64,000 nt of DNA, taken from positions 310,001-374,000 of IMG/VR virus record IMGVR_UViG_3300032334_002567; one strand, written 5' to 3'. The notes beneath the pieces are model-generated. The model ran no database searches, had not been told where the DNA came from, and saw nothing but the letters and a program-made list of their open reading frames with translations. The number at the start of each line of letters is the position of its first letter. Positions within the stretch are counted from its first letter, which is position 1. Both the position numbers and the translations under genes were made by a program. This document shows positions 233 through 32,003 of the stretch, piece after piece.

Positions 233-260
233 TTGACAAACTAATTGTACCCTGTAAAAT
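233..260 (+). promoter_or_regulatory. Sigma70-like promoter TTGACA-N16-TAAAAT straddling the first repeat copy
   Basis: TTGACA 233-238, TAAAAT 255-260. Confidence 0.45.
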
Positions 261-285
261 GGAAGCAACACCCCCCGGAGATCCA

Positions 286-558
286 ATGATGACAAGCGTT
301 TATGCGAAGATTACTGGTCGTGGCGAGTTTCCAATGGATATGCTGCGGTATGACAGTTGCAGCCCTGCTACTGAGTCCGACAGCTATTTGATTGCTCGCA
401 CCTTTCATGACTTTGATAGGTGGGAGATTTTTGTGAAGTGCCGCCCGCTGGAGAAGAGGCGTTCTCCTTGGACGGTTGGCAGGTGGGAGAGCTTCGGTTG
501 CAAGATCGAAGAAATTGACTATCATCCGCCACTTACCCGCAACACACAGCTTGCCTAA
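286..558 (+). CDS. Hypothetical phage protein (FPMDMLRYD motif)
   Basis: GGAG then ATG 286 after a repeat copy; track ORF 223..558 trimmed. Confidence 0.75.
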   Translation: MMTSVYAKITGRGEFPMDMLRYDSCSPATESDSYLIARTFHDFDRWEIFVKCRPLEKRRSPWTVGRWESFGCKIEEIDYHPPLTRNTQLA

Positions 559-564
559 GCTGTT

Positions 565-647
565 GCCGAAGTGGTGAAATTGGCATACACGCCAGACTCA
601 AAATCTGGTGCCCAAAAGGCGTGTGGGTTCGACCCCCACCTTCGGCA
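565..647 (+). tRNA. trnL: tRNA-Leu (anticodon CAA), CCA not encoded
   Basis: Acceptor stem GCCGAAG/CTTCGGC, anticodon arm CCAGA-CTCAAAA-TCTGG, long variable arm, T-loop GGTTCGACCC. Confidence 0.95.
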
Positions 648-672
648 TATTTAAATTGTACCCTAACAAAAC

Positions 673-747
673 GTTCCGATGGTGCCAACGCATTCGCTAG
701 GTGTTGGGCTTGGGTAAATGGTTGCCTTCTCAACCAGCCAACGGAAC
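673..747 (+). ncRNA. Putative three-way-junction RNA / structured 5' leader
   Basis: P1 673-683/737-747, P2 685-691/701-707, P3 719-724/731-736; begins 7 nt after the repeat core. Confidence 0.55.
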
Positions 748-777
748 ACTGATCTTAACCCCAACGGAGATAACCAA

Positions 778-1035
778 ATGGATAACTATGTTCATTTTGA
801 TGGTGAGTACGCTGATATTCCTGAGCTTACCCAAGGTGCTATCTTGCGGTATGTGCTTCAAAAGATTCCCCCCGGCAGTTTTCTGACGGCGGTTCTTTGC
901 AATGACCTCTATAACGCAACGGGTAGGGCAGATGCAAATAATCTGGTAGCTCTGCCTCTTATCGTGCGATGGTTTGCTAACAAGTGTCCGCATCTTTACG
1001 GTGCAGATAATATGTACAAGTACCTCGGCACCTAA
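778..1035 (+). CDS. Hypothetical phage protein (IPPGSFLTAVLCNDL motif)
   Basis: CCCCAACGGAG leader then ATG 778. Confidence 0.8.
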   Translation: MDNYVHFDGEYADIPELTQGAILRYVLQKIPPGSFLTAVLCNDLYNATGRADANNLVALPLIVRWFANKCPHLYGADNMYKYLGT

Positions 1036-1088
1036 ATAAAAATTGTACCCTATAAAGTTGTCCTTCTAACCCCCAACGGAGCTAACTT

Positions 1089-1400
1089 ATGCGTTATGCT
1101 GATTCCCGCTGTGAGATGATCGAAACTTACCAGCCTGATCACACCTACACCTTTGTCGGCCCGTGCATCGTGACCGGCAAGGAGCAGCGTGTCACGGTCA
1201 AAGCTCCCGACCTTTTCAAGTATCGGACGGGAGCATATGTTCAGGACGCTTTCCCCTACCTTGATGCCGCTGATCGTGAGTTTCTCATGACCGGCATGAG
1301 TGCAGAAGGTTGGCTTTTGACCTTCGGTGACGGTGCGGAAGACGATGAAGATTATGAAGATGATTGGGATGATGATGGAGAGCTTGGGGATCGGGATTGA
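1089..1400 (+). CDS. Hypothetical phage protein (QDAFPYL..DREFLMTG motif), acidic tail
   Basis: Repeat module and RBS upstream; stop abuts the next repeat. Confidence 0.8.
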   Translation: MRYADSRCEMIETYQPDHTYTFVGPCIVTGKEQRVTVKAPDLFKYRTGAYVQDAFPYLDAADREFLMTGMSAEGWLLTFGDGAEDDEDYEDDWDDDGELGDRD

Positions 1401-1440
1401 TTTGTACCCTAACTCTAACTCTACTCCCAAAGGATTATCT

Positions 1441-1902
1441 ATGACAGTTCACGATAAGATGTGCACACCTAGTGGCTTACAGGAATTGGCAAAAGAATGG
1501 TGGGACTGTCTTGTCTCTGATGAGCTAGCTTTGAGCCTAAGTACAGCTTATATAAAAGCAACTGAAGGATTCGAACCTGAAGCGGGCTCGTTCTCTGTTC
1601 CTTGTCTATGCTCCTCCGGCACAGGCCAGATTGTTTGGTTGAAAAACAGAATCAATGATTTGAATCTATTGCCCGTAGGCGAAGCACGAATGCACGACGA
1701 TATCCCAGCTGTTACAACAGCTGTATTGCATGTAGGTTTTTTGTCTGTGTTCGAAACAGAAGAAATGGTTTGCCGATTACGCAACGAGCCTCTACGTCAA
1801 AATTGTGAAAACCCAGCAAGGTCGAAGATGTTTGCGACAGCTCAAAAGCAGGATGTGGCTCCGATAGATCGTACTGCGTCAATCGTTTCTAGATCAAATT
1901 GA
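1441..1902 (+). CDS. Hypothetical protein
   Basis: AAGGA RBS then ATG 1441 after the repeat at 1400. Confidence 0.65.
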   Translation: MTVHDKMCTPSGLQELAKEWWDCLVSDELALSLSTAYIKATEGFEPEAGSFSVPCLCSSGTGQIVWLKNRINDLNLLPVGEARMHDDIPAVTTAVLHVGFLSVFETEEMVCRLRNEPLRQNCENPARSKMFATAQKQDVAPIDRTASIVSRSN

Positions 1903-2096
1903 TTTGGGAGTATCAAATGTCAATGAAAGTTTCTGAACTATCTGATTGGATCAAAACTCTTGAAAAAGATGATGTAGTCTGGATAGATGAGGGTGGACTA
2001 AACCTAGAAACTAAGGATGGAGCCTATCTGGAACTAGGCGGCAAAGTAGAGTTCTACGACGAAGATGATGACCCAAAAGGATTCTGGAGTAAATAA
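1899..2096 (+). CDS. Hypothetical protein
   Basis: Overlaps the upstream stop; start could be ATG 1917. Confidence 0.55.
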   Translation: MIWEYQMSMKVSELSDWIKTLEKDDVVWIDEGGLNLETKDGAYLELGGKVEFYDEDDDPKGFWSK

Positions 2097-2098
2097 CA

Positions 2099-2257
2099 AT
2101 GACTAAGCCTTACTTGGTGATCAAAAACAACTGCGCCATTGGTGTTGTTTTTGCTGGGAGTGAAACCGATGCACTCGTTATCGCTTGTGAAGCATATTGC
2201 GATGGCGTGACTGTAGAGTTGAGCCGTCAAAGTGGTCTAAGATCAGTAGGAGTATAA
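2099..2257 (+). CDS. Small hypothetical protein (52 aa)
   Basis: ATG 2099 to TAA 2257 fills the gap between adjacent genes. Confidence 0.5.
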   Translation: MTKPYLVIKNNCAIGVVFAGSETDALVIACEAYCDGVTVELSRQSGLRSVGV

Positions 2258-2260
2258 CCT

Positions 2261-2566
2261 ATGGAATGGATTAGTTTTTTCGGGCCACGTCGTCCAATCA
2301 ACGGACAAAAGATTTTCTATTACGGTGAGTGCATCGGTGTTTGGAGCGGAAATTACAGCTTAGACTGGAATGATCCAGTTAGCCCCCATCGGATAATTTG
2401 TGGGGAAAAAAGCAATGATGAAGTCTTAGCCGAATATGGTTTGAACAATCTGACTATGATTGTAGACCGTATGGATGCACCGTGGTGGATGCCTGACGAG
2501 GGACAGGAAAAGCCCAAAAAGCCAGAAACCGACTACCCAAAGGATTATCCAAGTCGAGAGGGCTAA
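2261..2566 (+). CDS. Hypothetical protein
   Basis: AGGAG RBS; ORF track. Confidence 0.7.
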   Translation: MEWISFFGPRRPINGQKIFYYGECIGVWSGNYSLDWNDPVSPHRIICGEKSNDEVLAEYGLNNLTMIVDRMDAPWWMPDEGQEKPKKPETDYPKDYPSREG

Positions 2567-2654
2567 ATAAAACCATTGTACCCTAAAAGGTCGTTACCCC
2601 ATTTGCACTTGAACGACTAATTCCTAAAATCTAAAATATAAGGGGAGAATAAAA

Positions 2655-2855
2655 ATGCAAAAGTTTATTTTTACAAACGTGAAGATCGAATACTTTGATT
2701 GTGAATGCTGCAAAGGTATGAAACCACCAGCAACCACAGTTTCAGAAGGGCCATTTGAGATAATGGCTCCAATTGGCATCAAACCAGAAAACATCGTAAA
2801 TGAGTTTTTTGGCGAGCCGGGACGAGTCATTGATTTCGAATGTCAAATTACCTAA
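2655..2855 (+). CDS. Hypothetical protein
   Basis: GGGGAG RBS; ORF track. Confidence 0.65.
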   Translation: MQKFIFTNVKIEYFDCECCKGMKPPATTVSEGPFEIMAPIGIKPENIVNEFFGEPGRVIDFECQIT

Positions 2856-2878
2856 TTCATCATTATTGACATTCAAGC

Positions 2879-2912
2879 AGACCCTTGAGATAAATCTCAG
2901 GGGTCTATTTTT
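2879..2912 (+). terminator. Rho-independent terminator
   Basis: AGACCCTTGAGA-TAAA-TCTCAGGGGTCT followed by a T-rich tract. Confidence 0.75.
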
Positions 2913-2935
2913 ATTTGTACCCTAAGGAGAATATC

Positions 2936-3229
2936 ATGTACAAACTATTTATCGATGATGTTCGTGACGCCCCGGATAGCCTCTGGACGGTGTGCAGATC
3001 ATCACATCAGGCTATTGAGCATATCAAGATTTATGGTATGCCAGCCCTTATCAGCTTTGACCATGACTTGGGCGGAGAAGACACCACCATGCTTTTCCTC
3101 CGTAGACTTGTGAACGAGCTTTGGGACGGTAAAACACCACCACCCAATTACAGAGTTCATTCTGCGAATCCTGTTGGCAGCGAAAATATCAAAAGCTTTA
3201 TGGAGAGTTGGAAAAAGTCGATTGAATAA
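2936..3229 (+). CDS. Cyclic-phosphate-processing receiver (cREC-type) domain protein
   Basis: KLFIDDVR, ISFDHDLG and VHSANPVG motifs. Confidence 0.8.
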   Translation: MYKLFIDDVRDAPDSLWTVCRSSHQAIEHIKIYGMPALISFDHDLGGEDTTMLFLRRLVNELWDGKTPPPNYRVHSANPVGSENIKSFMESWKKSIE

Positions 3230-3338
3230 ACTCTAAGGAGAGAGAAATGTCTAAGTTGACTCTTGGCGATAAGATTCTTTTCACTGCGTGTTTTATTGCT
3301 GGCTGTTTTGTTGTTTATCTAATCAACTAAGGAATAAA

Positions 3339-3605
3339 ATGACTGAGCTTTTTACCGACATTGCTATTGTTGTTATGTATCTTGGAACTGCTTTGGCGCT
3401 TTGTGCATTTGTTGGAATTGTTCTTCGGGTTGGTGATTTGGGATTTTGGTGCTTTGGGAAACTTGACGAATATCTGCAAGATAGGCATTTTGAGAAGCTC
3501 AGGAAGTCTTGGGAAAAGAATTGTACCCTAAAAGATTGTTCTAAACCCCAACGGAGTTCTTATGTCAATTCATATAACCAACTTTGTTCGACGCCAGACT
3601 GCTGA
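3339..3605 (+). CDS. Hypothetical membrane protein whose 3' end reads through the repeat at 3519
   Basis: N-terminal hydrophobic helix; AAGGA RBS. Confidence 0.55.
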   Translation: MTELFTDIAIVVMYLGTALALCAFVGIVLRVGDLGFWCFGKLDEYLQDRHFEKLRKSWEKNCTLKDCSKPQRSSYVNSYNQLCSTPDC

Positions 3606-4119
3606 AAGCCATTTCTCGCATTGGACGATCAGTGACGAGGAACTTATCTTTTGTGTTAGCCAGAACATGGACAGGGCTCATAAGGGATACCGGGATGGAG
3701 TTATTCTTGTCCCGATTAGTCCCGAAGGCTTTTTCAGTGCTGTGGCTGAATTGCAGATCAATGACACTCTGAATGGTTCTTTTTCTTGCCGTCGAGCTGG
3801 CGAGGAACCACGAAAAAGTGTCTTTATGATTGGTGAGAAGGTTCCCGCCCAAACAGTCTGGGTTGTTTTATACGCTCATCACGTTCTTGCTGAAAAGAAT
3901 GAAAACGAGAGCGATGCCGATTATGAAATTGTGAGCATCAACACCAGTCCTAGTGTTGATCAAAAGCCTGCTCCTATGCCGCCGGAAACGCTTATTGCTA
4001 ATCACTTTGAGCTTTCTGGGGGAACTGCAACAAATATGACCGATAGCGAGTTTGTTGCATCGCTGCGTGAAAGTGTGATGTATTGGAAAGATAAAGTTCA
4101 GGTTCAGCCTAACCTCTAA
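3562..4119 (+). CDS. DUF3228-family protein
   Basis: GYRDGVILVP, RRAGEEPR, VVLY.HHVL.E.NE, YEIVSIN and PM.PET....GGT motifs. Confidence 0.75.
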   Translation: MSIHITNFVRRQTAESHFSHWTISDEELIFCVSQNMDRAHKGYRDGVILVPISPEGFFSAVAELQINDTLNGSFSCRRAGEEPRKSVFMIGEKVPAQTVWVVLYAHHVLAEKNENESDADYEIVSINTSPSVDQKPAPMPPETLIANHFELSGGTATNMTDSEFVASLRESVMYWKDKVQVQPNL

Positions 4120-4128
4120 AGGAATAAC

Positions 4129-4401
4129 ATGAGAAGCACAACATTGCCTCTTTTTGAAAAGTGGTACGCAACAGCAACACCAGAGCAAATTGAGTTTGTT
4201 GATCAGGTTTATGCTATTTGTGAAGAAAACTACGAAAAGGGTGGAGATAGAATTGTTGAGTGCTATGGGCCAGAGGAAATCATCGAAGATTTCAATACAA
4301 TAGCTGAAGTTCGAGAGCACTGCAATTTGATGGTTGAGCAAGAGCTAAATGCCCGTTGGGGCGAAGATGATGACCCAGAGTTGAGTCGTGGCAAGTGGTG
4401 A
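4129..4401 (+). CDS. Hypothetical acidic protein
   Basis: AAAGGA RBS; ORF track. Confidence 0.75.
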   Translation: MRSTTLPLFEKWYATATPEQIEFVDQVYAICEENYEKGGDRIVECYGPEEIIEDFNTIAEVREHCNLMVEQELNARWGEDDDPELSRGKW

Positions 4402-4459
4402 GTTCTAAATAAATTGTACCCTAACAGGTTGTTCCGAATCACCCCTAACGGAGACAATC

Positions 4460-5023
4460 ATGTCTTACGAGAACGCTCCCCAGACGATTATGCTGGCGAC
4501 CAATTGCTGCTGCTGTGGTCGTCCGCTTTGCGATGCCATCTCTGTTGAGCTTGGTATCGGCCCGGAGTGCCGTGGTGGAAACAACGGTACTCTGACCGAG
4601 GAGCAGCGGCGTGAGTGCAACCAGCTTACACATGCTGCTGCCCTTGCGGCTCAGGAAGGAAAGATCGAAAACGTCCGATGGTGTTCGGAAGCTATTCGTG
4701 AGCTTGGCTTGCCAGAGCTTGCGGATAAGGTGGCTCACCGCTTTGTGAATGCAGAGCGGACGGCGAAGATCACCATTCGGATGGAGGACGGTATGCTCCT
4801 CGTCACTACGCCTTACAAGCGTTCGATGAAGGATGAGTTTACCGCCGCTTGGCGTAATGTCCCCGGTCGGCGGTGGGTTAGCCGGAAGCGGTGCAATGCG
4901 GTGCCTGTGAGCAGCAAGCCCCACTTGTGGGCTTTGCTCAAGCGGTTCTTCCCCGGCGAGTTCGGCATGGGCCCGAATGGGGTGTTCAGGGTTCCTGCCG
5001 AAAGCAAGAACGCCGCCGCATAG
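4460..5023 (+). CDS. DUF6011-like Zn-finger protein, C-terminus ...KNAAA
   Basis: C..CGRPL.D.IS.ELGIGPEC motif. Confidence 0.75.
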   Translation: MSYENAPQTIMLATNCCCCGRPLCDAISVELGIGPECRGGNNGTLTEEQRRECNQLTHAAALAAQEGKIENVRWCSEAIRELGLPELADKVAHRFVNAERTAKITIRMEDGMLLVTTPYKRSMKDEFTAAWRNVPGRRWVSRKRCNAVPVSSKPHLWALLKRFFPGEFGMGPNGVFRVPAESKNAAA

Positions 5024-5027
5024 CATC

Positions 5028-5068
5028 CAAACGGGGCGGGAGTGAAAATAATCCTCCCGCCCCGTTTG
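5028..5068 (+). repeat. GC hairpin (GGGGCGGG family), no U-tract
   Basis: 15-bp perfect stem CAAACGGGGCGGGAG/CTCCCGCCCCGTTTG. Confidence 0.8.
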
Positions 5069-5107
5069 TGATAAGTGATAAATCCCTTTACTCTTCTTTT
5101 GTGAATA

Positions 5108-5281
5108 ATGGAAAATATAAATTCTGTAGATACGATCAAAGAAATTGCAAGCCGTTTTTCTTGTATTCCCTTGAATGATATGACTTTTGCCGAAAAGGAC
5201 GTAGCAAATCTTTTGCTTGAAAAAGGATTTCTAACAATCGGTATAGATCATTGCGGTAAAAGAGTTTTTCATACTCTATAA
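5108..5281 (+). CDS. Small AT-rich hypothetical protein (57 aa)
   Basis: ATG 5108 to TAA 5281, ending just before a repeat copy. Confidence 0.5.
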   Translation: MENINSVDTIKEIASRFSCIPLNDMTFAEKDVANLLLEKGFLTIGIDHCGKRVFHTL

Positions 5282-5329
5282 AATAATTGTACCCTAGAAA
5301 GTTGTTCGATCCCACTCAAAGGAGTTGAC

Positions 5330-5455
5330 ATGGATCCCAACTACGACTTCTTTCTGGACTTCACGCAGGACTTGCAGAACGACGCAGAGTATAACGCTTG
5401 GCTCGACGAGCAGGAGCTTTACTCGCAACAGCAGGAAATGCCCGAAGACTTCTAA
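5330..5455 (+). CDS. Small acidic protein (41 aa)
   Basis: AAAGGAG RBS after the repeat at 5285. Confidence 0.65.
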   Translation: MDPNYDFFLDFTQDLQNDAEYNAWLDEQELYSQQQEMPEDF

Positions 5456-5615
5456 TTTCCTTCTAACCAACGGAGCTTTACCAGTGGTGTAAATACGAGG
5501 TTTTGGCGACAAGAGCCTCATCCAAGTCGCCCTAGGGCAGTCAGGCCACTGTCCTAGATTGTTTTTATTGTACCCTAGTAAGTTGTTCAATCCCAACCAT
5601 CAACCGGAGCTAACC

Positions 5616-5771
5616 ATGACCAGCTTTCTTCTGACTGTGAGCAGCTTTCTCGTTTCTGCCGCCCAAACGCCCTATCTGGACGGCTACTTTGCTGGTGCTG
5701 TGGCTATCGCCGTAACGATTGCGGTGAATGCTATTGTCATTGACTGCATCTACCGCTTCGGTACAAAGTAA
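5616..5771 (+). CDS. Small membrane protein
   Basis: CCGGAG RBS; hydrophobic segment; stop overlaps the next repeat. Confidence 0.65.
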   Translation: MTSFLLTVSSFLVSAAQTPYLDGYFAGAVAIAVTIAVNAIVIDCIYRFGTK

Positions 5772-5819
5772 TTTGTACCCTATAGAAGTGTTCAATCCTA
5801 ACCCCAACGGAGTTTCACG

Positions 5820-6164
5820 ATGAAGTGCATTAGCAATACTTTGGTGATTACTGCCGATATTTGGGAAGATCCGGGTGACTACCCTAATTCCCTTGCCGGT
5901 GGCCCGCTTCCCAGCCACTCTTACATTGAATCCAGCGGTGAACTGGTGCTGGAAGCTGAGAATAACGAGGAACTCGAAAGTTTCGACGCCCTAAACGATT
6001 GGTTCTCTGACTGGATTCATTGTGGTGCAGAGGCCAGCACTATAGGTGCATACGTTGATGTCCCCAGTTATTGGCATATTGACTGGGAGTTCAAAGTGGA
6101 GGGAAACATTCTCACCGTGACGGTCGGTGATGATTGTGAAGCTAACGAGCCAGATTATGATTAA
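5820..6164 (+). CDS. Hypothetical acidic protein
   Basis: Repeat module upstream; stop overlaps the next repeat. Confidence 0.8.
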   Translation: MKCISNTLVITADIWEDPGDYPNSLAGGPLPSHSYIESSGELVLEAENNEELESFDALNDWFSDWIHCGAEASTIGAYVDVPSYWHIDWEFKVEGNILTVTVGDDCEANEPDYD

Positions 6165-6211
6165 TTGTACCCTAACAGGTTGTTCTGATTTCCTCTAAAA
6201 CGGAGAGACAA

Positions 6212-6370
6212 ATGAACTGTTGGAAAAAGGCGTGGAATTGCTGCCTCAAAAACAAGGGCAGTGCAAAGGGCCGCAAAGAACTCAAGCGGGCCAACCATCG
6301 TGCCAACCGCCGTGTCGGTAAGAAGCTGGATAATGTTCACATTCGTCTGAACGGCTGGGACGTTATCTAA
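6212..6370 (+). CDS. Small basic protein (52 aa, MNCWKKAW...)
   Basis: CGGAG RBS; stop abuts the repeat at 6371. Confidence 0.7.
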   Translation: MNCWKKAWNCCLKNKGSAKGRKELKRANHRANRRVGKKLDNVHIRLNGWDVI

Positions 6371-6413
6371 AATTGTACCCTAACAAGTTGTTCGATCCTC
6401 ACCCCAACGGAGA

Positions 6414-6728
6414 ATGACCATGGCAATGTGCGAAGACTTCCCTTGTTGCGGACACGAGCCGGGATGCTGCCCCCGGTTCGATGAGAGCGGTCGGCAGTTG
6501 GATATGGTCTGCACTTGCGGTGCCAGACTGCCGGTTCACAATCGGTACAGTATTTGCGACCGTTGCCTTCGCATGGACGAAGACGGTTGCTATGACGACG
6601 ATTGTGAAACCTACGATGACGATGACTGCGAGGAAGACGACTGTGACGATGCCGATTGCGGTATCGAAGATCAGTTCCTCGACAGTTTCATGGAAGACCG
6701 CCTCAGTGGCGGCTTTTGTGAAGAATGA
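6414..6728 (+). CDS. Cys-rich (Zn-binding?) protein with acidic tail
   Basis: CEDFPCCGH, CTCG and C..C motifs. Confidence 0.75.
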   Translation: MTMAMCEDFPCCGHEPGCCPRFDESGRQLDMVCTCGARLPVHNRYSICDRCLRMDEDGCYDDDCETYDDDDCEEDDCDDADCGIEDQFLDSFMEDRLSGGFCEE

Positions 6729-6781
6729 AACACGGTTGCCGGGGCGGGTTGAGACTAACTCCCCGCCCCGGCCCGTTGGGG
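6729..6781 (+). repeat. AACACGG-GC hairpin-CCGTTGGGG element (copy A)
   Basis: Near-identical to the elements at 9689 and 11937. Confidence 0.85.
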
Positions 6782-6803
6782 CTTTCAAACAAGGAGACAA
6801 GTA

Positions 6804-7019
6804 ATGTCTGTATATTTCAACAAGCAAATGGCTAATCTTATCAACGTCTATGTCAAGTGTCCTACCAGTGGTCGAACGCTGGACGCAGATAGGCACGATG
6901 ACAAAGTATTGTGCAACTGCCCAGAGGCTATGAGCCGGGGCGGTACCCATATTGTTTCAAAGTGTGAACCGTCAACGGTCGAACAGTTCATGGTAGAAAA
7001 CAATTTTACAGAGAACTAA
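6804..7019 (+). CDS. Small Cys-containing hypothetical protein
   Basis: AGGAG RBS; ORF track. Confidence 0.7.
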   Translation: MSVYFNKQMANLINVYVKCPTSGRTLDADRHDDKVLCNCPEAMSRGGTHIVSKCEPSTVEQFMVENNFTEN

Positions 7020-7028
7020 AACCCACCT

Positions 7029-7066
7029 TAGGGTACAAATAAAGTAATTAAAATAATTGTACCCTA
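7029..7066. repeat. Inverted pair TAGGGTACAA-N18-TTGTACCCTA
   Basis: Direct reading of the sequence. Confidence 0.9.
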
Positions 7067-7102
7067 GAAAAGTGTTCGATAACCCCCAACGGAGAATCCC
7101 TC

Positions 7103-7333
7103 ATGCCAGTCGAAGTTCACACCAGCGGTTCTGTTTCTTATACCGGTGAAGACGGCGTAGCTCTTTTCCGTCTCATTACTCTTCACTCTGCCCTGCGCCT
7201 TCAGGCCACCACCGGCATGAAAGCGTCAAGGATCAGTGCTGTGGCTTGTGCCAAGCGACTTGGCTATACAGGCCGCACCGCAAAGGCTCTGCTTGCAGAC
7301 ATCGAACGGAAGCACCCTGAGCTGAAGAAGTAA
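7103..7333 (+). CDS. Hypothetical protein
   Basis: Repeat module upstream; stop overlaps the next repeat. Confidence 0.8.
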   Translation: MPVEVHTSGSVSYTGEDGVALFRLITLHSALRLQATTGMKASRISAVACAKRLGYTGRTAKALLADIERKHPELKK

Positions 7334-7378
7334 ATTGTACCCTAGTTAATCGTTCGACACCCCCAACAAGAGGATGCA

Positions 7379-7582
7379 ATGAGTAACATCGAAGACAAGA
7401 TGGAAGCAATCGAAAAGTGGCGCAATGACAATTTGTGCTTTCTCGACGGCCAGCCTGCAAAGATTGTGGGTTGGAAAGAAAAGTTTCCAATCGTGAGCCA
7501 AATCGACGGCCCTCTTGCTTTTGAGTGGTCGTGGGCCGCTGTCAACAGGATCATGTCCGGTGATCGACAGTTCAAGAGCTAG
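7379..7582 (+). CDS. Hypothetical protein
   Basis: Repeat module and GAGGA RBS. Confidence 0.8.
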   Translation: MSNIEDKMEAIEKWRNDNLCFLDGQPAKIVGWKEKFPIVSQIDGPLAFEWSWAAVNRIMSGDRQFKS

Positions 7583-7624
7583 ATCATTTGTACCCTATTA
7601 AAGCGTTCAACACCCCAACGGAGA

Positions 7625-7957
7625 ATGATCATGGAATACACCGAAGCCCTCAAAGTTCTTGGCAAGCGTGATTCGAAGAAAGTCGGAAACAACACCTACA
7701 TGATCCGGCTGGGTTCGGACATCGGTATTCGACTTCACAACACCGTTGTGGTGACCATCCATCCCGACAATACCTACACACTCAATAGCGGTGGATGGCA
7801 GACAGTGACAACAAAGGATCGGATCAACCAGTATTCACCGGTTCGTGTGTATCAATCAAAAAGCGTTTGGTATGTCGGTCAAGGCGAGCTGTTTTACGAC
7901 AACATGAAAGTCGGTGTCGTTTGCGGTGAGCCGCTAGCTTTAGGAATTGTACCCTAG
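7625..7957 (+). CDS. Hypothetical phage protein (TLNSGGW.T.TTK.RIN motif); stop TAG lies inside the repeat
   Basis: Repeat module upstream; 3' end reads GGAATTGTACCCTAG. Confidence 0.8.
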   Translation: MIMEYTEALKVLGKRDSKKVGNNTYMIRLGSDIGIRLHNTVVVTIHPDNTYTLNSGGWQTVTTKDRINQYSPVRVYQSKSVWYVGQGELFYDNMKVGVVCGEPLALGIVP

Positions 7958-7996
7958 TAGGTTGTGTAACCACCCCCAACGGAGTTGTGAAAAAAC

Positions 7997-8278
7997 ATGA
8001 TGAACTACAGCGGTTGTAACAGCTGGATCTACATCTACGCCATCGGTGGCAATTGGAACCCCGGCCCCAGCGGTGACGAGTTCGTGGGCTGTGCCTACGA
8101 CGCCTCCACTGCCCTCAGCCTGCTCGACTTGGTCGAGTTGAAGGGTGGCTATGCCGTCAGCCTGCACGGTGACAACCTGCATACGCTCAATGCCGTCAGC
8201 GGCGAGTGTGGTGTGCGGGAAGCCCGTATCATGTTCAAGCTCTGGAAAGAGAAAGAGGCGGTCGTTGTCGCTGGGTAA
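7997..8278 (+). CDS. Hypothetical protein
   Basis: Repeat module upstream. Confidence 0.75.
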   Translation: MMNYSGCNSWIYIYAIGGNWNPGPSGDEFVGCAYDASTALSLLDLVELKGGYAVSLHGDNLHTLNAVSGECGVREARIMFKLWKEKEAVVVAG

Positions 8279-8331
8279 CAATAAATAAATTGTACCCTAA
8301 AAGAGTGTTCGATCCCAACGGAGAAGCGATC

Positions 8332-8475
8332 ATGGAAATTAAATTCAACTTCAAAACACGTCAGTACGACGTTTGCATCACATTCTTCGACGGCAGAACC
8401 CCCATAAATGTTTGCTCTTTCTACAAAGAGTCGGATGCTCGCGCCTACGTCATGGTTCACAATGTCAAGTGTTAG
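8332..8475 (+). CDS. Small hypothetical protein (47 aa)
   Basis: CCAACGGAGAAGCGATCATG leader. Confidence 0.7.
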   Translation: MEIKFNFKTRQYDVCITFFDGRTPINVCSFYKESDARAYVMVHNVKC

Positions 8476-8534
8476 ATTCAATAAATAAATTGTACCCTGA
8501 CAGAGTGTTCGATCCACCCCAACGGAGTTTTGAA

Positions 8535-8687
8535 ATGACCGAAAACGAAATCAATGTTCTGGAAGAGGCCGCATCGCACATTCGAAACGATGCTTACAAC
8601 TGCGATAGCAGTCTGGATCGCAAGTATTTCGAAAAGCTTGCCGATAAGATCGAAGACATTATCGCCAAGCATAATCAAAGCAAATAA
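8535..8687 (+). CDS. Small hypothetical protein (50 aa)
   Basis: Repeat module upstream; stop overlaps the next repeat. Confidence 0.7.
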   Translation: MTENEINVLEEAASHIRNDAYNCDSSLDRKYFEKLADKIEDIIAKHNQSK

Positions 8688-8736
8688 ATTGTACCCTAGA
8701 TGATTGTTCGATTCACACCCCAACGGAGAAGCGATC

Positions 8737-9117
8737 ATGGCAAGCTGGTACACCGTCAGCGAGAGCAAGATTCAGTGGGCTCCCATCGGCACCCGTGTTC
8801 TGAAGACTGGCGAGACTAAGCCGAAGTTTTCCCGGATCGGCGTCCGTATCAATATGGTGGACGGTAGCTGGTGGTTCCACAGCTTCAAGCACGATAGCTG
8901 GACGCAACACTATCCCCGGAAGCAGGCCACCGACAAGCTGGGACGGCCCATTTTCGAGGATGGTCAGCCGCTCCTGCGACCGGAACGCAAGGAAACCTAC
9001 CGCAACTGGATGGCGGTTGTGAGAGAGTTCGGCACTCGACTGCCCGCTCTGGTTGTCGCTCTGGAAAACGGTCACGCCGAAGCTCTGCTAGCCGAAGCAG
9101 AGAAAACGGCAGCGTAA
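8737..9117 (+). CDS. Hypothetical protein, C-terminus ...EKTAA
   Basis: Leader CCAACGGAGAAGCGATCATGG, shared with the gene at 8332. Confidence 0.8.
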   Translation: MASWYTVSESKIQWAPIGTRVLKTGETKPKFSRIGVRINMVDGSWWFHSFKHDSWTQHYPRKQATDKLGRPIFEDGQPLLRPERKETYRNWMAVVREFGTRLPALVVALENGHAEALLAEAEKTAA

Positions 9118-9190
9118 AACGTGTGCTAGGGGCGGCAAGGCTCTACGGCCAAAAGCCGCGAAACTGCTAGCCGCCCCTAGCCCGTTGGGG
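9118..9190 (+). repeat. GC hairpin-CCGTTGGGG element (divergent copy D)
   Basis: GCTAGGGGCGGC ... GCCGCCCCTAGC stem, then CCGTTGGGG. Confidence 0.75.
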
Positions 9191-9253
9191 TACTTATAAA
9201 TAATTGTACCCTAAAAGTGTGTTGCGAACGCCCCTCTTTTTCAAGGATGAAAA

Positions 9254-9424
9254 ATGTACGCTCTGACGATGATCATAGGTTTTCTTGGCTACGGGTTCGG
9301 GTACGAGGGTTGTGAAAAAGGAAAGATATATTTCGGCGTGTATACCCCCAAAGCCGAATATGGTTGGGTCATGACAGAAAAAGACGTTTATCTGGATACC
9401 GTGTACCAGAAAACTTCTAAATAA
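9254..9424 (+). CDS. Small hypothetical protein (56 aa)
   Basis: AAGGA RBS; stop overlaps the next repeat. Confidence 0.6.
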   Translation: MYALTMIIGFLGYGFGYEGCEKGKIYFGVYTPKAEYGWVMTEKDVYLDTVYQKTSK

Positions 9425-9465
9425 ATTGTACCCTAGTTGATTGTTCGATCCAACCCCAACGGAGA

Positions 9466-9690
9466 ATGACAATGCCAAATATCAACTGGTTCGACGGTCA
9501 GAATGCGGTTGGCAAGTACGTTATGGAACTCATGTACGACGACGGTAGCGTCAGCTACATGAAAAATGAGAACTACGAGCAGATTTGCCACTACTACCGG
9601 CTTGCTTTGGAAATGTCGGAAGTGGTGGGTGCGACCATCTACAACCCAAAGTGGCAAGTAGTTTGCTCGACAGCACGGGCCGCAGCGTGA
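9466..9690 (+). CDS. Hypothetical protein, C-terminus ...ARAAA
   Basis: Repeat module upstream. Confidence 0.8.
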   Translation: MTMPNINWFDGQNAVGKYVMELMYDDGSVSYMKNENYEQICHYYRLALEMSEVVGATIYNPKWQVVCSTARAAA

Positions 9691-9770
9691 ACACGGTTGC
9701 CTGGGCGGGTTGAGACAAAACTCCCCGCCCTGGCCTGTTAGGGTATTTATATTGTACCCTATAGAAGTGT
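9678..9770 (+). repeat. About 90-bp linker (Ala-Ala-Ala-stop, hairpin, repeat core), near-identical to 11926..12024
   Basis: GGCCGCAGCGTGAACACGGTTGCC(T/G)GGGCGGGT...TTTATATTGTACCCTATAGAAGTGT in both copies. Confidence 0.9.
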
Positions 9771-9796
9771 CAGCCACCCCAAACACAGGAGCCAAT

Positions 9797-9958
9797 ATGA
9801 GCAATAACGAAAAACCGTACTGCTTCGAAGAAGCCCGTTTCAAGCGTGAAATGGAATACGTGGCTCGTAAGCTCAAAGAGGCGTTGGAACTCAAGGAATA
9901 CGCCAAACAACTGGCAAAAGAAAAAGAACAAAAAGAGAAAGAGGAAAGCCGGGACTAA
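9797..9958 (+). CDS. Small charged coiled-coil protein
   Basis: AGGAG RBS after the repeat at 9750. Confidence 0.7.
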   Translation: MSNNEKPYCFEEARFKREMEYVARKLKEALELKEYAKQLAKEKEQKEKEESRD

Positions 9959-9987
9959 CACCCCCGGTTCTCTTTTTTAGTCGGCCA

Positions 9988-10033
9988 TAGGGTACAAATA
10001 AAATAAAAAGGGATATACAATAATTGTACCCTA
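9988..10033. repeat. Inverted pair TAGGGTACAA-N26-TTGTACCCTA
   Basis: Direct reading of the sequence. Confidence 0.9.
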
Positions 10034-10040
10034 TAACAGT

Positions 10041-10155
10041 GTGAATGATTGCGAGGCCGCACCATCGGCACTACTGTCCGGTTGCAAACGGCAGTAACTC
10101 GCGGGAGCGGTATGCCGAAAGGCAGCGAGTGGTGCACCCCATCGCAATCGTTCAC
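10041..10155 (+). ncRNA. Structured ncRNA (~115 nt) occupying its own unit of the array
   Basis: 14-bp closing stem 10041-10054/10142-10155; GCACCA/TGGTGC; hairpin 10072-10096; CTCGC/GCGAG; TGCC-GAAA-GGCA; no RBS or ORF between two repeat copies. Confidence 0.75.
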
Positions 10156-10209
10156 AACAAAACAATTGTACCCTAGAAAAGTGTTCGATTCACCCCAACG
10201 GAGACGATC

Positions 10210-10545
10210 ATGACTTTCGTCAACCTGACCCCGCACACGATCACTGTGGTTCTCGACAATACCAGCGTGCAATTCCCGGCTTCTGGCAACGTGGCCCGTG
10301 TTTCCACCAGTCGAGTCTCTGGCCCCACGCTAACCGTCTACGGCGATTCTGTCGGTATCCAGACTTCCCGTGTCGAGTTCGGGGCAGTCGAGGGGCTTCC
10401 CGATCCCGTGGACGGCACGGTTTACATTGTGAGCGGAATGGTCGCAGCCCGTGTCAACCGGCCCGACGTTTTCGCTCCCGGTGAACTGGTGCGTGATGCA
10501 AACGGCCAGCCCACCGGCTGCAAGGGTCTGACTTGCAGCGGTTGA
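10210..10545 (+). CDS. Hypothetical phage protein (VNLTPH.I N-terminus)
   Basis: Repeat module upstream; N-terminal motif I recall from phage hypothetical proteins. Confidence 0.8.
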   Translation: MTFVNLTPHTITVVLDNTSVQFPASGNVARVSTSRVSGPTLTVYGDSVGIQTSRVEFGAVEGLPDPVDGTVYIVSGMVAARVNRPDVFAPGELVRDANGQPTGCKGLTCSG

Positions 10546-10602
10546 TTATTATAATTGTACCCTATAGAAGTGTTCGATCCCAACCCCAACGGAGACTCAC
10601 GA

Positions 10603-11043
10603 ATGAACGACATTCTTCTCGCCGCCCTGACCAGCTGCTTCAGCAAGATGGCAAAGGCCGCTGGCCCGATTGCCCCCGGCCTGCACCAGGTCGATGAAAC
10701 GATCACGATGCGGGTCAAGGGCGAGGTGCTGAAGTCGGACGACGAAACCTACGTCCCGACGATTGCGATTCCCGTCAAGGCCGTGATGGCTACGTTGCTC
10801 CCCCGGTTGGGTGCGACACGGGAGGCTGCGATGGAAACGCTTATCGCCGCCATGACTGAAGCGGTCAATCTGGACAAGCTGGGCGATGAAACGCTCAAAG
10901 CCCGGATGAAAGACGTTGACGCGGCTTTCGAGCATGTGCAGAACGTGCTCGACGCCCTCCCGCCAAAGACACGGACGGGAAAGACGAACGTGGACGTGAC
11001 CCTTGTGGTCGCTCCCACGCCCGCCGTCGCACTTGTCCCGTGA
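10603..11043 (+). CDS. Hypothetical protein
   Basis: CCCCAACGGAG then ATG 10603. Confidence 0.8.
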   Translation: MNDILLAALTSCFSKMAKAAGPIAPGLHQVDETITMRVKGEVLKSDDETYVPTIAIPVKAVMATLLPRLGATREAAMETLIAAMTEAVNLDKLGDETLKARMKDVDAAFEHVQNVLDALPPKTRTGKTNVDVTLVVAPTPAVALVP

Positions 11044-11045
11044 CG

Positions 11046-11098
11046 ATACGGCATCGGGGGCGGGAGGAACTAACAACTCCCGCCCCCACTAGCCGTTT
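11046..11098 (+). repeat. GC hairpin (GGGGCGGGAG/CTCCCGCCCC; copy E)
   Basis: Same stem family as 5028 and 6729. Confidence 0.75.
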
Positions 11099-11152
11099 GT
11101 GCAATTGTACCCTATTGGTTTGTGTGATTCGTCCCTTTACTTTGGAGCAGTT

Positions 11153-11335
11153 ATGGAAGCGAAAATCGAGAACGGCTTTCTGGTTCTGCGAGTCCCGATG
11201 AATGCAACGCCGATTCGTTCGTCTACCGGCAAGACTTTGGTGGTTGCCTCGACCTATGGCAACAAGGCAACCGAAGTGACGGTGGACGGCAAGACGGTCA
11301 CCGTGGGCGTCAACGCCTATATCAAGGCCGCTTGA
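11153..11335 (+). CDS. Small conserved beta-rich protein (S.TGKTLVVAST.GN), C-terminus ...YIKAA
   Basis: GGAG RBS; ATG 11153. Confidence 0.8.
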   Translation: MEAKIENGFLVLRVPMNATPIRSSTGKTLVVASTYGNKATEVTVDGKTVTVGVNAYIKAA

Positions 11336-11356
11336 CCCCAACGGTTCGGATCGAAA

Positions 11357-11393
11357 GCCGGAGGGGACAGCCACCCCCTCCGGTTCTTTTTTT
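11357..11393 (+). terminator. Rho-independent terminator, repeated at 12470
   Basis: CCGGAGGGG-ACAGCCAC-CCCCTCCGG followed by TTCTTTTTTT. Confidence 0.85.
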
Positions 11394-11402
11394 AGCCCGC
11401 CA

Positions 11403-11439
11403 TAGGGTACAAATAAATATATAAAATAATTGTACCCTA
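11403..11439. repeat. Inverted pair TAGGGTACAA-N17-TTGTACCCTA
   Basis: Direct reading of the sequence. Confidence 0.9.
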
Positions 11440-11482
11440 GATAAGTGTTCGATCTAACCTTCCCTCTCACTTGGAGTCAACG

Positions 11483-11551
11483 ATGATCGCTCTCGTTCTC
11501 GCGTTTGGCCTTGGTTTCGCCGCCATTTCTGCCGTTTACTGGGTGCTGTAA
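11483..11551 (+). CDS. 22-aa single-helix membrane peptide (MIALVLAFGLGFAAISAVYWVL)
   Basis: TTGGAG RBS inside its own repeat-bounded unit. Confidence 0.55.
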   Translation: MIALVLAFGLGFAAISAVYWVL

Positions 11552-11644
11552 AGCTCCCAGTCTAACACCTGAGTGATTAGGGTATAAAGTAATTGTACCC
11601 TAGATAAGTGTTCGATCCGATCCCACCCCAACCGGAGACGCACG

Positions 11645-11938
11645 ATGAAGAACGCTTTCGACCGCACGAACAGCATGAAGAACAAGCTCAAGGCCGATTG
11701 GAACCGGATGGTGGGGGAACTGGTGTCCATCCCCGCCGGTTGCCAGATTCACAGCCTGACGCTCACGCAGACCAACTTCGGTTGGGTCTACGCCCGGAAG
11801 CACGGCCAGCCCGTGCCGGTCGCCCAGTTGCGGAACGCCGCCGTGACGAAGGGTTACTGTATCCTGCACGACGGCCCCAACTTCCGGGTGGCCCTCCCGC
11901 CGAAGCGGAACGGGGAGCCGGTCAAGGCCGCAGCGTGA
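11645..11938 (+). CDS. Hypothetical protein, C-terminus ...VKAAA
   Basis: Repeat module upstream. Confidence 0.8.
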   Translation: MKNAFDRTNSMKNKLKADWNRMVGELVSIPAGCQIHSLTLTQTNFGWVYARKHGQPVPVAQLRNAAVTKGYCILHDGPNFRVALPPKRNGEPVKAAA

Positions 11939-12024
11939 ACACGGTTGCCGGGGCGGGTCGAGACTAACTCCCCGCCCCGGCCCCGTTGGGGTACTTGTAT
12001 TTATATTGTACCCTATAGAAGTGT
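11926..12024 (+). repeat. Linker copy C (Ala-Ala-Ala-stop, hairpin, repeat core)
   Basis: Near-identical to 9678..9770. Confidence 0.9.
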
Positions 12025-12054
12025 TCGATCCCCACCCCCAACCGGAGCCGCCCC

Positions 12055-12444
12055 ATGTTGAATGAAGCGTTCTTTCAGGTGTGCAACGATGCCGTCCCCG
12101 CAAAGTCCAGCTACGTCTCGCTCTACGTCAACGTGCCGTACTACGGTGGGCCGGAGGAAGGTGGATGGTGGGGCAGTGACACCGCACTAGTCGCTCACTA
12201 CAAGTGTGACAGCCAGCCCCATGCCGAAGCTGTGAAGGCCCGTGTCGAGGAGCTGGCCCAGCAGTTGAGCGACGATGCCCGCCGGTCGTTTGGTCAAGCC
12301 TGCAAGGCCCAGTGTGAATGGCTGGACGCACGTGGGTTGGACGCCGACTACCTGCCCGAAGTGGACGGGGAGGAAACCTACTGGGTCGCCGTCGAGGATC
12401 GCCCCGGTGAACACGCCAGCCAAGGGTGCAGGCACTACGAATAA
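12055..12444 (+). CDS. Hypothetical phage protein (YGGPEEGGWW motif)
   Basis: Repeat module upstream; stop abuts the next repeat. Confidence 0.8.
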   Translation: MLNEAFFQVCNDAVPAKSSYVSLYVNVPYYGGPEEGGWWGSDTALVAHYKCDSQPHAEAVKARVEELAQQLSDDARRSFGQACKAQCEWLDARGLDADYLPEVDGEETYWVAVEDRPGEHASQGCRHYE

Positions 12445-12469
12445 AATTGTACCCTATCAAGCACACCGA

Positions 12470-12504
12470 CCGGAGGGGACAGCCAACCCTCCGGCTTTCT
12501 TTTC
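12470..12504 (+). terminator. Rho-independent terminator, paralogue of 11357
   Basis: CCGGAGGG-GACAGCCAA-CCCTCCGG followed by CTTTCTTTT. Confidence 0.8.
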
Positions 12505-12513
12505 AGCCCGCCA

Positions 12514-12552
12514 TTGGGTACAAATAAAGTAATACATAATAATTGTACCCTA
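12514..12552. repeat. Inverted pair TTGGGTACAA-N19-TTGTACCCTA
   Basis: Direct reading of the sequence. Confidence 0.85.
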
Positions 12553-12699
12553 GTAATATACAGGAGGGTATTACAAAGATAATAATACAGAAATAAAAAG
12601 CGAAAACCTTTTAAAAAAATTGTACCCTAGGTACCCTCCCCCCCGCAATTACTGTCTTATTTTTTAAGTCGTCCTGACTTTTTTTCCCGTATTAGCACC

Positions 12700-12768
12700 G
12701 TTGCAAAATCCCGGTTACAAACGTTGCAAAATCCCGGTTACAAACGTTGCAAAATACCAGTTACAAAA
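12700..12768 (+). repeat. Three tandem 23-bp repeats GTTGCAAAAT(C/A)CC(G/A)GTTACAAA(C/A)
   Basis: Copies start at 12700, 12723 and 12746. Confidence 0.9.
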
Positions 12769-31949: not shown

Positions 31950-32003
31950 TTTTACCCCAATCATTATTTTAATAAAGTTATTTATGCCTTATTATAGTAT
32001 TTT

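Follow-up and report, generated by a model that had tools for sequence, protein, structure and literature searches.

A 50.6-kb unidirectional array of probably early genes headed by an invariant 10-bp core, a putative promoter, in an uncultured huge tailed phage

We analysed a 64,000-nt stretch of DNA (hereafter the window), positions 310,001-374,000 of the IMG/VR contig 3300032334_002567 (381,443 bp). Its first part is the distal quarter of an array in which small genes and non-coding units are each headed by the same 10-bp core, TTGTACCCTA. The whole array occupies contig positions 271,991-322,620 (50.6 kb) and has 73 forward cores and about 109 open reading frames (ORFs), all on a single strand. 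It is best explained as a unidirectional block of probably early genes of an uncultured huge tailed phage, in which the invariant core and its AT-rich 5′ flank would form a compact single-element promoter and the cassettes would be shuffled by recombination between the repeated modules. We give this explanation as a whole a probability of about 0.6.

A repeated core confined to one block

In the window, WTTGTACCCTA occurred 34 times (31 forward and 3 reverse), compared to 0.07 expected from shuffled sequences. The core TTGTACCCT had 33 forward copies spanning 245-12628, the first starting at 245 and the last at 12620, and no forward copy was found in the remaining 51 kb (12629-64000). The initial annotation, made from the letters of the window, had counted 33 forward repeats and none in the other 51 kb, and this count was reproduced (33 vs. 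0.07 expected by chance). Two copies, at 245 and 8490, end in G in place of A. The reverse orientation, TTGTACCC, had four copies in the window, each just past a terminator hairpin.

For the counts of core copies and ORFs, contig positions 262,380-330,000 were pieced together. The initial annotation had let the array begin at 243, where it is in fact truncated by the window edge; its true start at contig position 271,991 lies 38 kb further upstream, and its 3′ end at contig position 322,620 corresponds to position 12620 of the window. Two cores 24 nt apart stand at the 5′ end, about 360 nt upstream of a RuvB-like AAA+ gene, and this opening of the array is a divergent intergenic region. Neither the 9.6 kb preceding the array nor the 51 kb following it contained a copy of the core, and a scan of the whole contig with the core-plus-box pattern gave matches only within 272-327 kb. 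An even spread of the motif over the genome was not seen, the copies being confined to one 50.6-kb block in the regions scanned. Cores became denser towards the distal end: the proximal part had one every 1.5-2 kb, and the part inside the window one every ~330 bp. All units pointed the same way, as had been stated at the outset, with every ORF on the + strand.

The same sequence was assembled independently in a second sample of the Joint Genome Institute (JGI) and in Logan and ENA data, which rules out an assembly artefact for the array as well as for the change in composition at its end. By exact-protein look-ups, the window part of the array was identical in three assemblies, with no strain-level variation there. 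The array region had a G+C content (GC) of 0.43-0.57 compared to 0.32-0.41 in the rest of the window. A chimeric assembly at this GC drop was ruled out, since two JGI assemblies from different samples span the drop identically; it is also contradicted by a related contig (L082) that matches across the last of the putative promoters. A megablast search of the array against 50,697 phage records gave no match, and the motif was found in the full text of the literature only as unrelated primer matches.

The remainder of the window codes for baseplate proteins (a gpV-type spike and gpJ- and gpI-type wedge proteins) and other phage functions, so the source is a huge tailed phage. Its closest relative in GenBank is the uncultured 595-kb phage LR756511.1, with 46% identity in a baseplate protein. 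The same protein is only 22-28% identical to those of T4-like and other myoviruses; judged by these identities, the source phage is not of the T4 type.

Each unit begins with an AT-rich flank and the core; then come a leader containing a Shine-Dalgarno (SD) site and the cargo, which is mostly one small ORF and at times a tRNA or a structured RNA. One ORF was present in 22 units of the window, two to four in 7 and none in 4. Ten positions of the core are invariant across copies (TTGTACCCT, plus A in 94%). Upstream of it stand AA and a 6-nt A/T-rich stretch, with no conservation further upstream; downstream come about 5 variable A-rich bases and, in roughly 60-75% of copies, a (G/T)TGTTCGAT box. 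Among the window copies, a GTTC(G/A)A-type box followed 19/33 and a CC(C/A)AAC(C)GGAG leader 15/33, and with the 22 one-ORF units these figures confirm the earlier description of a box, a leader and a single ORF after the repeat. In the distal units a C/A-rich run ends in GGAG, 6-9 nt ahead of the ATG. The spacing from core to ATG is mostly 41-52 nt, and some units have only 7-20 nt between the core and the start codon. The leaders are predicted to be unstructured (fold z near 0).

Where units abut an upstream stop codon, the gaps are 1-15 nt and have no stem-loop. G/C-rich hairpins were found at about 10/33 window junctions, and these belong to two types of repeated terminator module with three copies each. 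After most terminator hairpins, an inverted core lies 7-26 nt upstream of the forward core, with which it could form a 9-10-bp stem. Inverted cores are at 7029-7039, 9988-9998, 11403-11413 and 12515-12523, and degenerate ones near 9188, 9740, 11578 and 11989; the arrangement is also kept in four related contigs (L054, L068, L081 and L082). A 76-nt terminator module at 9678-9753 and 11926-12001 is 82% identical between its two copies and ends two unrelated ORFs. Both ORFs finish with identical last four codons (Ala-Ala-Ala-stop), and exchange of the module therefore extends into coding sequence.

The core as a candidate promoter of probably early genes

The core was found on the coding strand at the head of every unit. 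It recurs directly after intrinsic terminators (for example at 2915, following a hairpin and T run at 2879-2906), heads ORF-less units, stands upstream of tRNA genes and opens the array in a divergent region, which together argue for a transcription-initiation signal. The earlier proposal that the repeat drives expression is thus supported on sequence evidence, as an expression module heading each unit. A sigma-70-type bipartite promoter is excluded by the layout: no conserved -35 element was found near the core, and no TATAAT-like hexamer at normal spacing downstream of TTGTAC. Sigma-70-type sites were not enriched either (17 found, 14.3 expected). An N4-like hairpin promoter was ruled out for this genome, as most cores have no dyad. 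Most likely, the core is a promoter for a transcription factor or polymerase that is probably specified by the phage.

The position of the start was estimated from 196 units pooled from this phage and its relatives. In short-leader units, the SD starts 8-10 nt past the core and very few are closer; in four units an ATG without SD stands 6-7 nt past the core. Because of this SD pile-up and these ATGs, the geometry suggests a transcription start about 6-8 nt downstream of the core, as for a -10-type element (TG-TAcccT). Alternatively, transcription may start at the end of the core, as the core at 2915 with its abutting AAGGAG would allow.

In the mechanism that we propose, a specificity factor common to the phage clade, either a sigma-like protein or a phage polymerase, would read the core without a sigma-70 -35/-10 pair and initiate within about 8 nt past it. 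Many RNAs would then open with a conserved, unstructured C/A-rich leader (GTGTTCGAT box, then CCCCAACGGAG) that presents the SD site, so that its own promoter and leader would give each small gene its own strong start, and the repeated terminator modules would insulate some units.

A sigma-70-family gene, the only one in the window, lies 8 kb beyond the array at 20421-21332 (-); it matched Sigma70_r4 (E = 9e-9), Sigma70_r2 (E = 2e-4) and a PHROG sigma factor (E = 2e-17). We also considered the 4404-aa ORF at 38024-51238 as a virion polymerase, and this candidate was dropped, as it had no Pfam, PHROG or PDB sequence match. The protein is rich in Ala, Leu, Gly, Lys and Glu, strongly hydrophobic at residues 1201-1600 and encoded just upstream of the baseplate hub genes; from this composition and position, it is probably a giant tape-measure protein.

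Codon usage separates the array from the rest of the window. GC at third codon positions was 0.39-0.67 in array genes compared to 0.26 in the other window genes. Outside the array, 70% of Arg codons were AGA and 37% of Leu codons were TTA, compared to 5-21% and 0-10%, respectively, inside it; CAA and GAA showed the same shift, being dominant outside and avoided inside. The tRNA genes of the array are Arg-UCU, Leu-UAA, Gln-UUG and Glu-UUC, for exactly these four codons, plus Leu-CAA. The simplest reading is that the array genes would be translated early with host tRNAs, and that the AT-rich remainder would rely on the tRNAs of the array. Early timing is favoured by this codon split and tRNA set, which are circumstantial. 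The GC of the array exceeded that of its flank in every relative, and recent import from GC-richer relatives could add to the GC gradient. A gene for a tRNA nucleotidyltransferase (CCA-adding enzyme) at 30477-31964 (-) fits the investment of the phage in its own tRNAs.

Conservation, cassette turnover and rival explanations

Relatives were found with the RuvB-like first gene as an anchor, or by the DNA pattern (ten freshwater metagenome contigs). Searches with the ClpP-like gene beside the array and with the sigma gene returned the same phage only. Syntenic arrays were present in other huge-phage contigs and in a contig binned with a Chloracidobacterium metagenome-assembled genome. The latter (L098, JAYVUD010000138.1) is 48 kb long, has 7 cores and encodes a RuvB-like protein with 64% identity; its binning may be an artefact or may point, weakly, to the phylum of this relative's host. 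In the arrays of eleven related contigs, with GC from 0.40 to 0.60 by one count and from 33% to 60% by another, the core TGTACCCTA was invariant. The upstream flank was lineage-specific, being AT-rich in the low-GC group and TAGGTCcA, TAGTGTcA, TTTAGAGnT or TCAgaCcA elsewhere.

In some members of the clade, the syntenic position downstream of the RuvB-like gene is occupied by another repeated module. This is CCTGAATTTA-ATTGTATTTTT in L057 and L058, and AGCCGTTCG-N11-GGCACCCnA in L062; a sigma-54 reading of the L062 module was ruled out because the -12 GC is absent. No such repeat was found in L063. In two GC-rich arrays, L056 (11576-19080) and L098 (3033-14367), a second and more numerous module stands in the same array (n = 12 and 19, respectively). 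It consists of GAACC, a hairpin whose stem covaries between copies and GGTCT(T/A)CCAT, and may represent a second promoter class or a 5′ RNA structure. A common core with lineage-specific flanks and wholesale replacement is the pattern expected from co-evolution with a phage-encoded recognition protein, which we infer from this comparison.

The content and order of cassettes were compared among the relatives, as had been suggested initially, and both motif-bounded indels and altered order were found. Between L054 and L055 (about 83% identical), alignment blocks start and stop at cores. Where L054 has a single putative promoter, L055 has promoter-cassette-promoter (604 bp), and within the module the two flanking alignments share 19 bp. 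In L055, a tandem duplication of 273 bp begins at a core, and several cassettes are replaced between conserved cores. The freshwater relatives have 4-12 cassettes in common with the array at 68-82% nucleotide identity, in scrambled order (L066, L068, L071, L081 and L082; Kendall tau -0.6 to 0.45). For example, the order in L082 in the numbering of the source array is 6, 13, 16, 12, 21, 17, 15, 22, 5, 19, 23. Only one to five genes, at unrelated positions, are common to the whole array and more distant clade members. The core is retained by homologous ORFs in every case, but their leaders are often quite different between genomes. Leader identity was 65% between unrelated distal units of this genome and 59% for orthologues in other genomes, over a background of 49-50%. 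This similarity of leaders fits exchange or homogenisation at the level of modules.

These changes resemble those at the promoter-early stem-loop (PeSL) cassettes, which are repeated in the hyperplastic regions of T4-type phages (Arbiol et al. 2010, PMC2839356; Comeau et al. 2014, PMC4122927). Another PeSL trait is the mini-circles that arise when neighbouring modules recombine. The promoter part of PeSL is identical to the host sigma-70 consensus, with -35 and -10 boxes and an AT-rich upstream region (PMC2839356). In our explanation, the promoter/leader and terminator modules of 20-50 bp, present as dozens of direct repeats and common to co-infecting relatives, would serve as homology patches, at which general recombination would delete, duplicate, swap and reorder cassettes as PeSL do in T4-type phages. 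Both systems have a small composite module that extends from an upstream stop codon to the SD and start codon; in between stand an AT-rich stretch, a promoter (putative here) and, in many cases, a G/C-rich stem-loop terminator. In both, about 50-70 copies are concentrated upstream of small ORFans, and the modules mark the junctions of indels, replacements and duplications between related phages. Unlike PeSL, the array has a single invariant 10-bp element in place of a sigma-70 -35/-10 pair, all of its copies are gathered on one strand within a single 50-kb block, where PeSL occupy several regions, a stem-loop is found in only about a third of the window units, an inverted core accompanies its terminators, and its phage is not T4-like. 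The analogy to PeSL drawn initially thus holds for architecture and dynamics and fails for the sigma-70-like promoter and the T4-type phage. As the defining promoter and the phage lineage are not matched, the array is an analogue of PeSL and not a member.

Several observations weigh against the proposed explanation. The more distant phage LR756511.1 has the RuvB-like gene and no repeated motif. The sigma-70-family protein (20421-21332) is a candidate reader only, and contig 253-374 kb (121 kb of 381 kb), with the upstream part down to 253 kb included, gave no phage RNA polymerase. A phage-encoded factor that serves early genes would have to be injected with the DNA or expressed beforehand from a few host-type promoters. 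Close strains of the source phage (91-94% identical) are collinear over the proximal 19 kb (by another count, 30 kb), with the exception of a 616-bp gene inserted just after a putative promoter, and only the left edge of this insertion lies at the promoter. Furthermore, junctions at modules are partly unavoidable, since the modules fill nearly all intergenic space; for this reason, we infer rather than observe that the repeats cause the reshuffling. The earlier idea of a recombination handle is accordingly upheld as far as it concerns module-bounded turnover of cassettes (insertion, duplication, replacement, reordering), and not as regards causation by the motif itself. A more far-reaching version, which we put forward tentatively, is that the core TGTACCCTA could be the recognition site of a new phage-encoded initiation protein (sigma-like or a non-canonical polymerase), possibly delivered with the DNA, clade-wide in freshwater huge phages and co-evolving with the flanks, and that the array could be an integrase-free platform for cassette exchange. 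If so, its orthogonal promoter would make any captured gene immediately expressible in any member of the clade.

The core could instead be an ordinary early promoter of the host polymerase, with TAcccT as the -10 and an adjacent TG, or an operator of a repressor or activator near weak promoters. The minimal TAnnnT of -10 elements is matched by TACCCT, a start about 7 nt past a -10 hexamer would agree with the SD sites at 8-10 nt and the ATGs at 6-7 nt, and the PeSL promoters of T4-type phages belong to the host sigma-70 class (PMC2839356). In addition, the copy at 245 is overlapped by the only near-consensus sigma-70 pair of the region (TTGACA-16 nt-TAAAAT at 233-260, 11/12 matches), where a host-type promoter may overlie the phage motif. 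However, the TG abuts the TA without a spacer base, a -35 is missing and the C-rich hexamer matches TATAAT poorly; invariance of 10/10 over 73 copies is unlike host promoters, and the use of other modules by relatives at the same locus (ATTGTATTTTT; AGCCGTTCG then GGCACCCnA) is better fitted by a co-evolving phage factor. A host promoter or operator is therefore unlikely. The strict unidirectionality, the units abutting stop codons with gaps of 1-15 nt and the missing -35 would also be expected of an RNA-level signal, if an endoribonuclease of the host or the phage cleaved one or a few long polycistronic transcripts at UUGUACCCUA or beside it, yielding monocistronic mRNAs with uniform 5′ leaders. 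The inverted and forward cores can indeed pair in read-through RNA as a 9-10-bp hairpin, a substrate of the RNase III type, but the inverted partner is missing at most copies. Moreover, the core follows strong terminators with T runs, so that transcription would have to begin anew there; the array opens with two cores in a divergent intergenic region, into which no transcript should run from upstream; and the conserved AT-rich flank upstream of the core is promoter-like. We consider RNA processing quite improbable.

An integron-like array, in which a dedicated site-specific recombinase excises and inserts cassettes as circles at the repeat, would account for the promoter-to-promoter cassette indels, the tandem duplication of a unit and the scrambled order between relatives. 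One array ORF (L013:5461-6372, contig 277,987-278,898, 303 aa) had an IS110-type transposase match (E = 0.001), although this spans 37 residues and is below the cutoff of Pfam. No integrase or recombinase Pfam family was found in contig 253-334 kb, and the search for a recombinase or phage RNA polymerase that had been suggested initially gave neither a site-specific recombinase nor a polymerase in the 121 kb read. Neither an internal dyad nor an imperfect repeat of the attC kind is present in the core, whose spacing from the SD and ATG is constrained in the manner of an expression signal; integron cassettes lack promoters and have their recombination site at the 3′ end. This alternative is very improbable.

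Comparison with known systems, unit details and neighbouring genes

Phage-specified promoter sets are read by the single-subunit polymerases of T7, T3 and SP6 or by sigma-like proteins such as T4 gp55 and phiEco32 gp36; their targets are middle or late genes, and the polymerase or sigma in question has been identified. The array resembles these sets in having near-identical copies of about 18-20 bp in the genome with no -35, and a common core whose upstream part is lineage-specific and differs between related phages. It differs in that its genes look early and that the 121 kb read yielded no gene for a single-subunit polymerase. Compared with T7-like promoters (~20 bp including the start), the length and invariance of the element fit, and the SD pile-up at +8 to +10 suggests a start past the core and not within it. 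As in phages with sigma-like factors, a sigma-70-family gene (20421-21332) is present, as a candidate reader only.

Host-takeover or early modules include the terminal-redundancy module of SPO1, the pre-early genes of T5, the early genes of T4 and the early clusters of phiKZ. The array shares with them a dense set of small, mostly unknown genes with many strong promoters (putative in the array), terminators and strong ribosome-binding sites. Unlike them, it is much larger (73 putative promoters and about 109 ORFs) and sharply set apart in codon usage, and cassette shuffling among relatives is documented. With integron arrays it has in common unidirectional, unrelated single-gene cassettes with a repeated element between them and a content that varies among relatives. 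Integrons have an adjacent tyrosine-recombinase integrase with attI, and each of their promoterless cassettes ends in an attC site made of imperfect inverted repeats. The array differs in having no integrase among the called genes of contig 253-334 kb (Pfam) and no attC-type structure, in its non-palindromic 10-bp repeat at the 5′ end, and in a putative promoter for each cassette instead of the single promoter Pc. The start-associated sequences of Cluster K mycobacteriophages are conserved and overlap the ribosome-binding site of a subset of genes. The CCCCAACGGAG leader of the array likewise overlaps the ribosome-binding site, in 15/33 window units; unlike the start-associated sequences, which precede the start codon by a few bases, the main motif precedes it by 41-52 nt and also heads non-coding units.

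What stands out in the array is its scale, the clade-wide invariance of the core, the terminator junctions with inverted cores and the partition of codons and tRNAs. The infection programme of uncultured huge phages is little understood, and the array offers a concrete entry point: a 10-bp signal with 73 copies here and hundreds in relatives would mark a temporal class of ~110 genes and should allow the protein that recognises it to be traced. Shuffling of promoter and terminator modules, documented in T4-type phages, would be extended to an unrelated lineage at a larger scale, which suggests repeated expression modules as a general route of phages to the turnover of accessory genes. For the proposal that large phages use host tRNAs early and their own tRNAs late, the codon split offers a clean case in nature. 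In addition, a short and highly specific promoter could serve as an orthogonal expression part.

The cargo of the array is mixed, as had been noted initially, with a 22-aa ORF (11483-11551), a tRNA (564-648) and a GC per gene of 0.35-0.64. Pfam matches were obtained for 4/34 window ORFs (cREC_REC, DUF6011, and weakly DUF3228 and Kyano_Gp96), none of effector function, and the earlier view of the cargo as host-takeover effectors remains a guess. The window array ORFs matched 16 PHROG families, none with an assigned function. The proximal array encodes AAA+/VWA pairs, a DUF2201 metallopeptidase, a ligase and UvdE. An Rfam search of the array found tRNA only, and the ORF-less units had no match.

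The units are given below in window coordinates, all on the + strand. Unit 1 (243-655) has the G-ending core 245-254, ORF 286-558 (90 aa) and tRNA-Leu(CAA) 564-648. Unit 2 (654-1042; core 656-665) has a long leader and ORF 778-1035 (85 aa). Its leader contains a 61-nt non-coding element (680-740) that is 96.7% identical in L068, L078 and L082/L084, compared to only 68-82% for the protein cassettes of these contigs. The element adjoins a tRNA-Val gene there and stands just after tRNA-Leu here; it had no Rfam match, and its predicted fold was no better than shuffles (z = -0.24). Unit 3 (1041-1401; core 1043-1052) carries ORF 1089-1400 (103 aa), and unit 4 (1400-2575; core 1402-1411) carries four ORFs (1441-1902, 1917-2096, 2099-2257 and 2261-2566). 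Unit 5 (2574-2914; core 2576-2585) consists of ORF 2655-2855 (66 aa) and the terminator hairpin and T run 2879-2906. Right after this terminator comes unit 6 (2913-3520), with core 2915-2924, the abutting AAGGAG and ORFs 2936-3229 (cREC_REC), 3247-3330 and 3339-3605. Unit 7 (3519-4413; core 3521-3530) has ORFs 3562-4119 (weak DUF3228, with homologues in five related arrays) and 4129-4401, and unit 8 (4412-5286; core 4414-4423) has ORF 4460-5023 (DUF6011), a hairpin near 5031-5068 and ORF 5108-5281.

The following units are mostly short. Unit 9 (5285-5567; core 5287-5296) carries ORF 5330-5455 (41 aa) and a non-coding tail with hairpin 5532-5557, unit 10 (5566-5772; core 5568-5577) the hydrophobic ORF 5616-5771 (51 aa), unit 11 (5771-6164; core 5773-5782) ORF 5820-6164 (114 aa), and unit 12 (6163-6372; core 6165-6174) the basic ORF 6212-6370 (52 aa). 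In unit 13 (6371-7056; core 6373-6382), the Cys/Asp-rich ORF 6420-6728, which has homologues in six related contigs, is followed by a repeated terminator module (6729-6781), ORF 6804-7019 and the inverted core 7029-7039. Unit 14 (7055-7334; core 7057-7066) has ORF 7103-7333 (76 aa) and unit 15 (7333-7587; core 7335-7344) has ORF 7379-7582 (67 aa). The stop codon of ORF 7631-7957 (weak Kyano_Gp96) of unit 16 (7586-7946; core 7588-7597) lies within the next core. Unit 17 (7945-8289; core 7947-7956) carries ORF 7997-8278 (93 aa), unit 18 (8288-8489; core 8290-8299) ORF 8332-8475 (47 aa), and unit 19 (8488-8688; G-ending core 8490-8499) ORF 8535-8687 (50 aa). ORF 8737-9117 (126 aa) of unit 20 (8687-9203; core 8689-8698) has homologues in L071, L076 and L082, and it is followed by a long hairpin and then the degenerate inverted core near 9188. 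Unit 21 (9202-9425; core 9204-9213) has ORF 9254-9424 (56 aa).

Unit 22 (9424-9751; core 9426-9435) carries ORF 9472-9690 and terminator module 9690-9742, whose last codons and hairpin are common to the 11926-12001 copy. Unit 23 (9750-10023; core 9752-9761) has ORF 9797-9958, the second type of terminator module (9961-10002) and the inverted core 9988-9998. Unit 24 (10022-10165; core 10024-10033) has no ORF; a folded 132-nt transcript (10034-10165) with a long stem is predicted (-60.7 kcal/mol, z = -5.85). In a diverged counterpart from L076 the 3′ arm is shared, and the closing stem shows what look like one or two compensatory changes. Unit 25 (10164-10554; core 10166-10175) carries ORF 10210-10545 (111 aa), and unit 26 (10553-11104; core 10555-10564) ORF 10603-11043 (146 aa) and a hairpin near 11056-11088. 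In unit 27 (11103-11429; core 11105-11114), ORF 11153-11335 is followed by a terminator with T run (11356-11385) and the inverted core 11403-11413. Unit 28 (11428-11592; core 11430-11439) has the hydrophobic 22-aa ORF 11483-11551, unit 29 (11591-12005; core 11593-11602) ORF 11645-11938 (97 aa) and terminator module 11938-11990, and unit 30 (12004-12446; core 12006-12015) ORF 12055-12444 (129 aa). The last two units have no ORF: unit 31 (12445-12542; core 12447-12456) contains a terminator-type hairpin (12470-12503) and an inverted core ending at 12523, and unit 32 (12541-12619; core 12543-12552) is an AT-rich stretch of 67 nt. The last core (12618-12629; core 12620-12629) marks the end of the array and the start of the GC drop.

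Right after the last core, at the GC drop, there are three iteron-like 23-bp direct repeats (12692-12767), and a 23-nt repeat has two copies 107 bp apart at 12766-12895; these repeats could mark an origin or a regulatory site. A ClpP-type protease gene (13612-14154) lies immediately after the array. Beside the sigma gene, the ORF 19915-20439 (+) encodes an MscL mechanosensitive-channel domain, which is unusual phage cargo.

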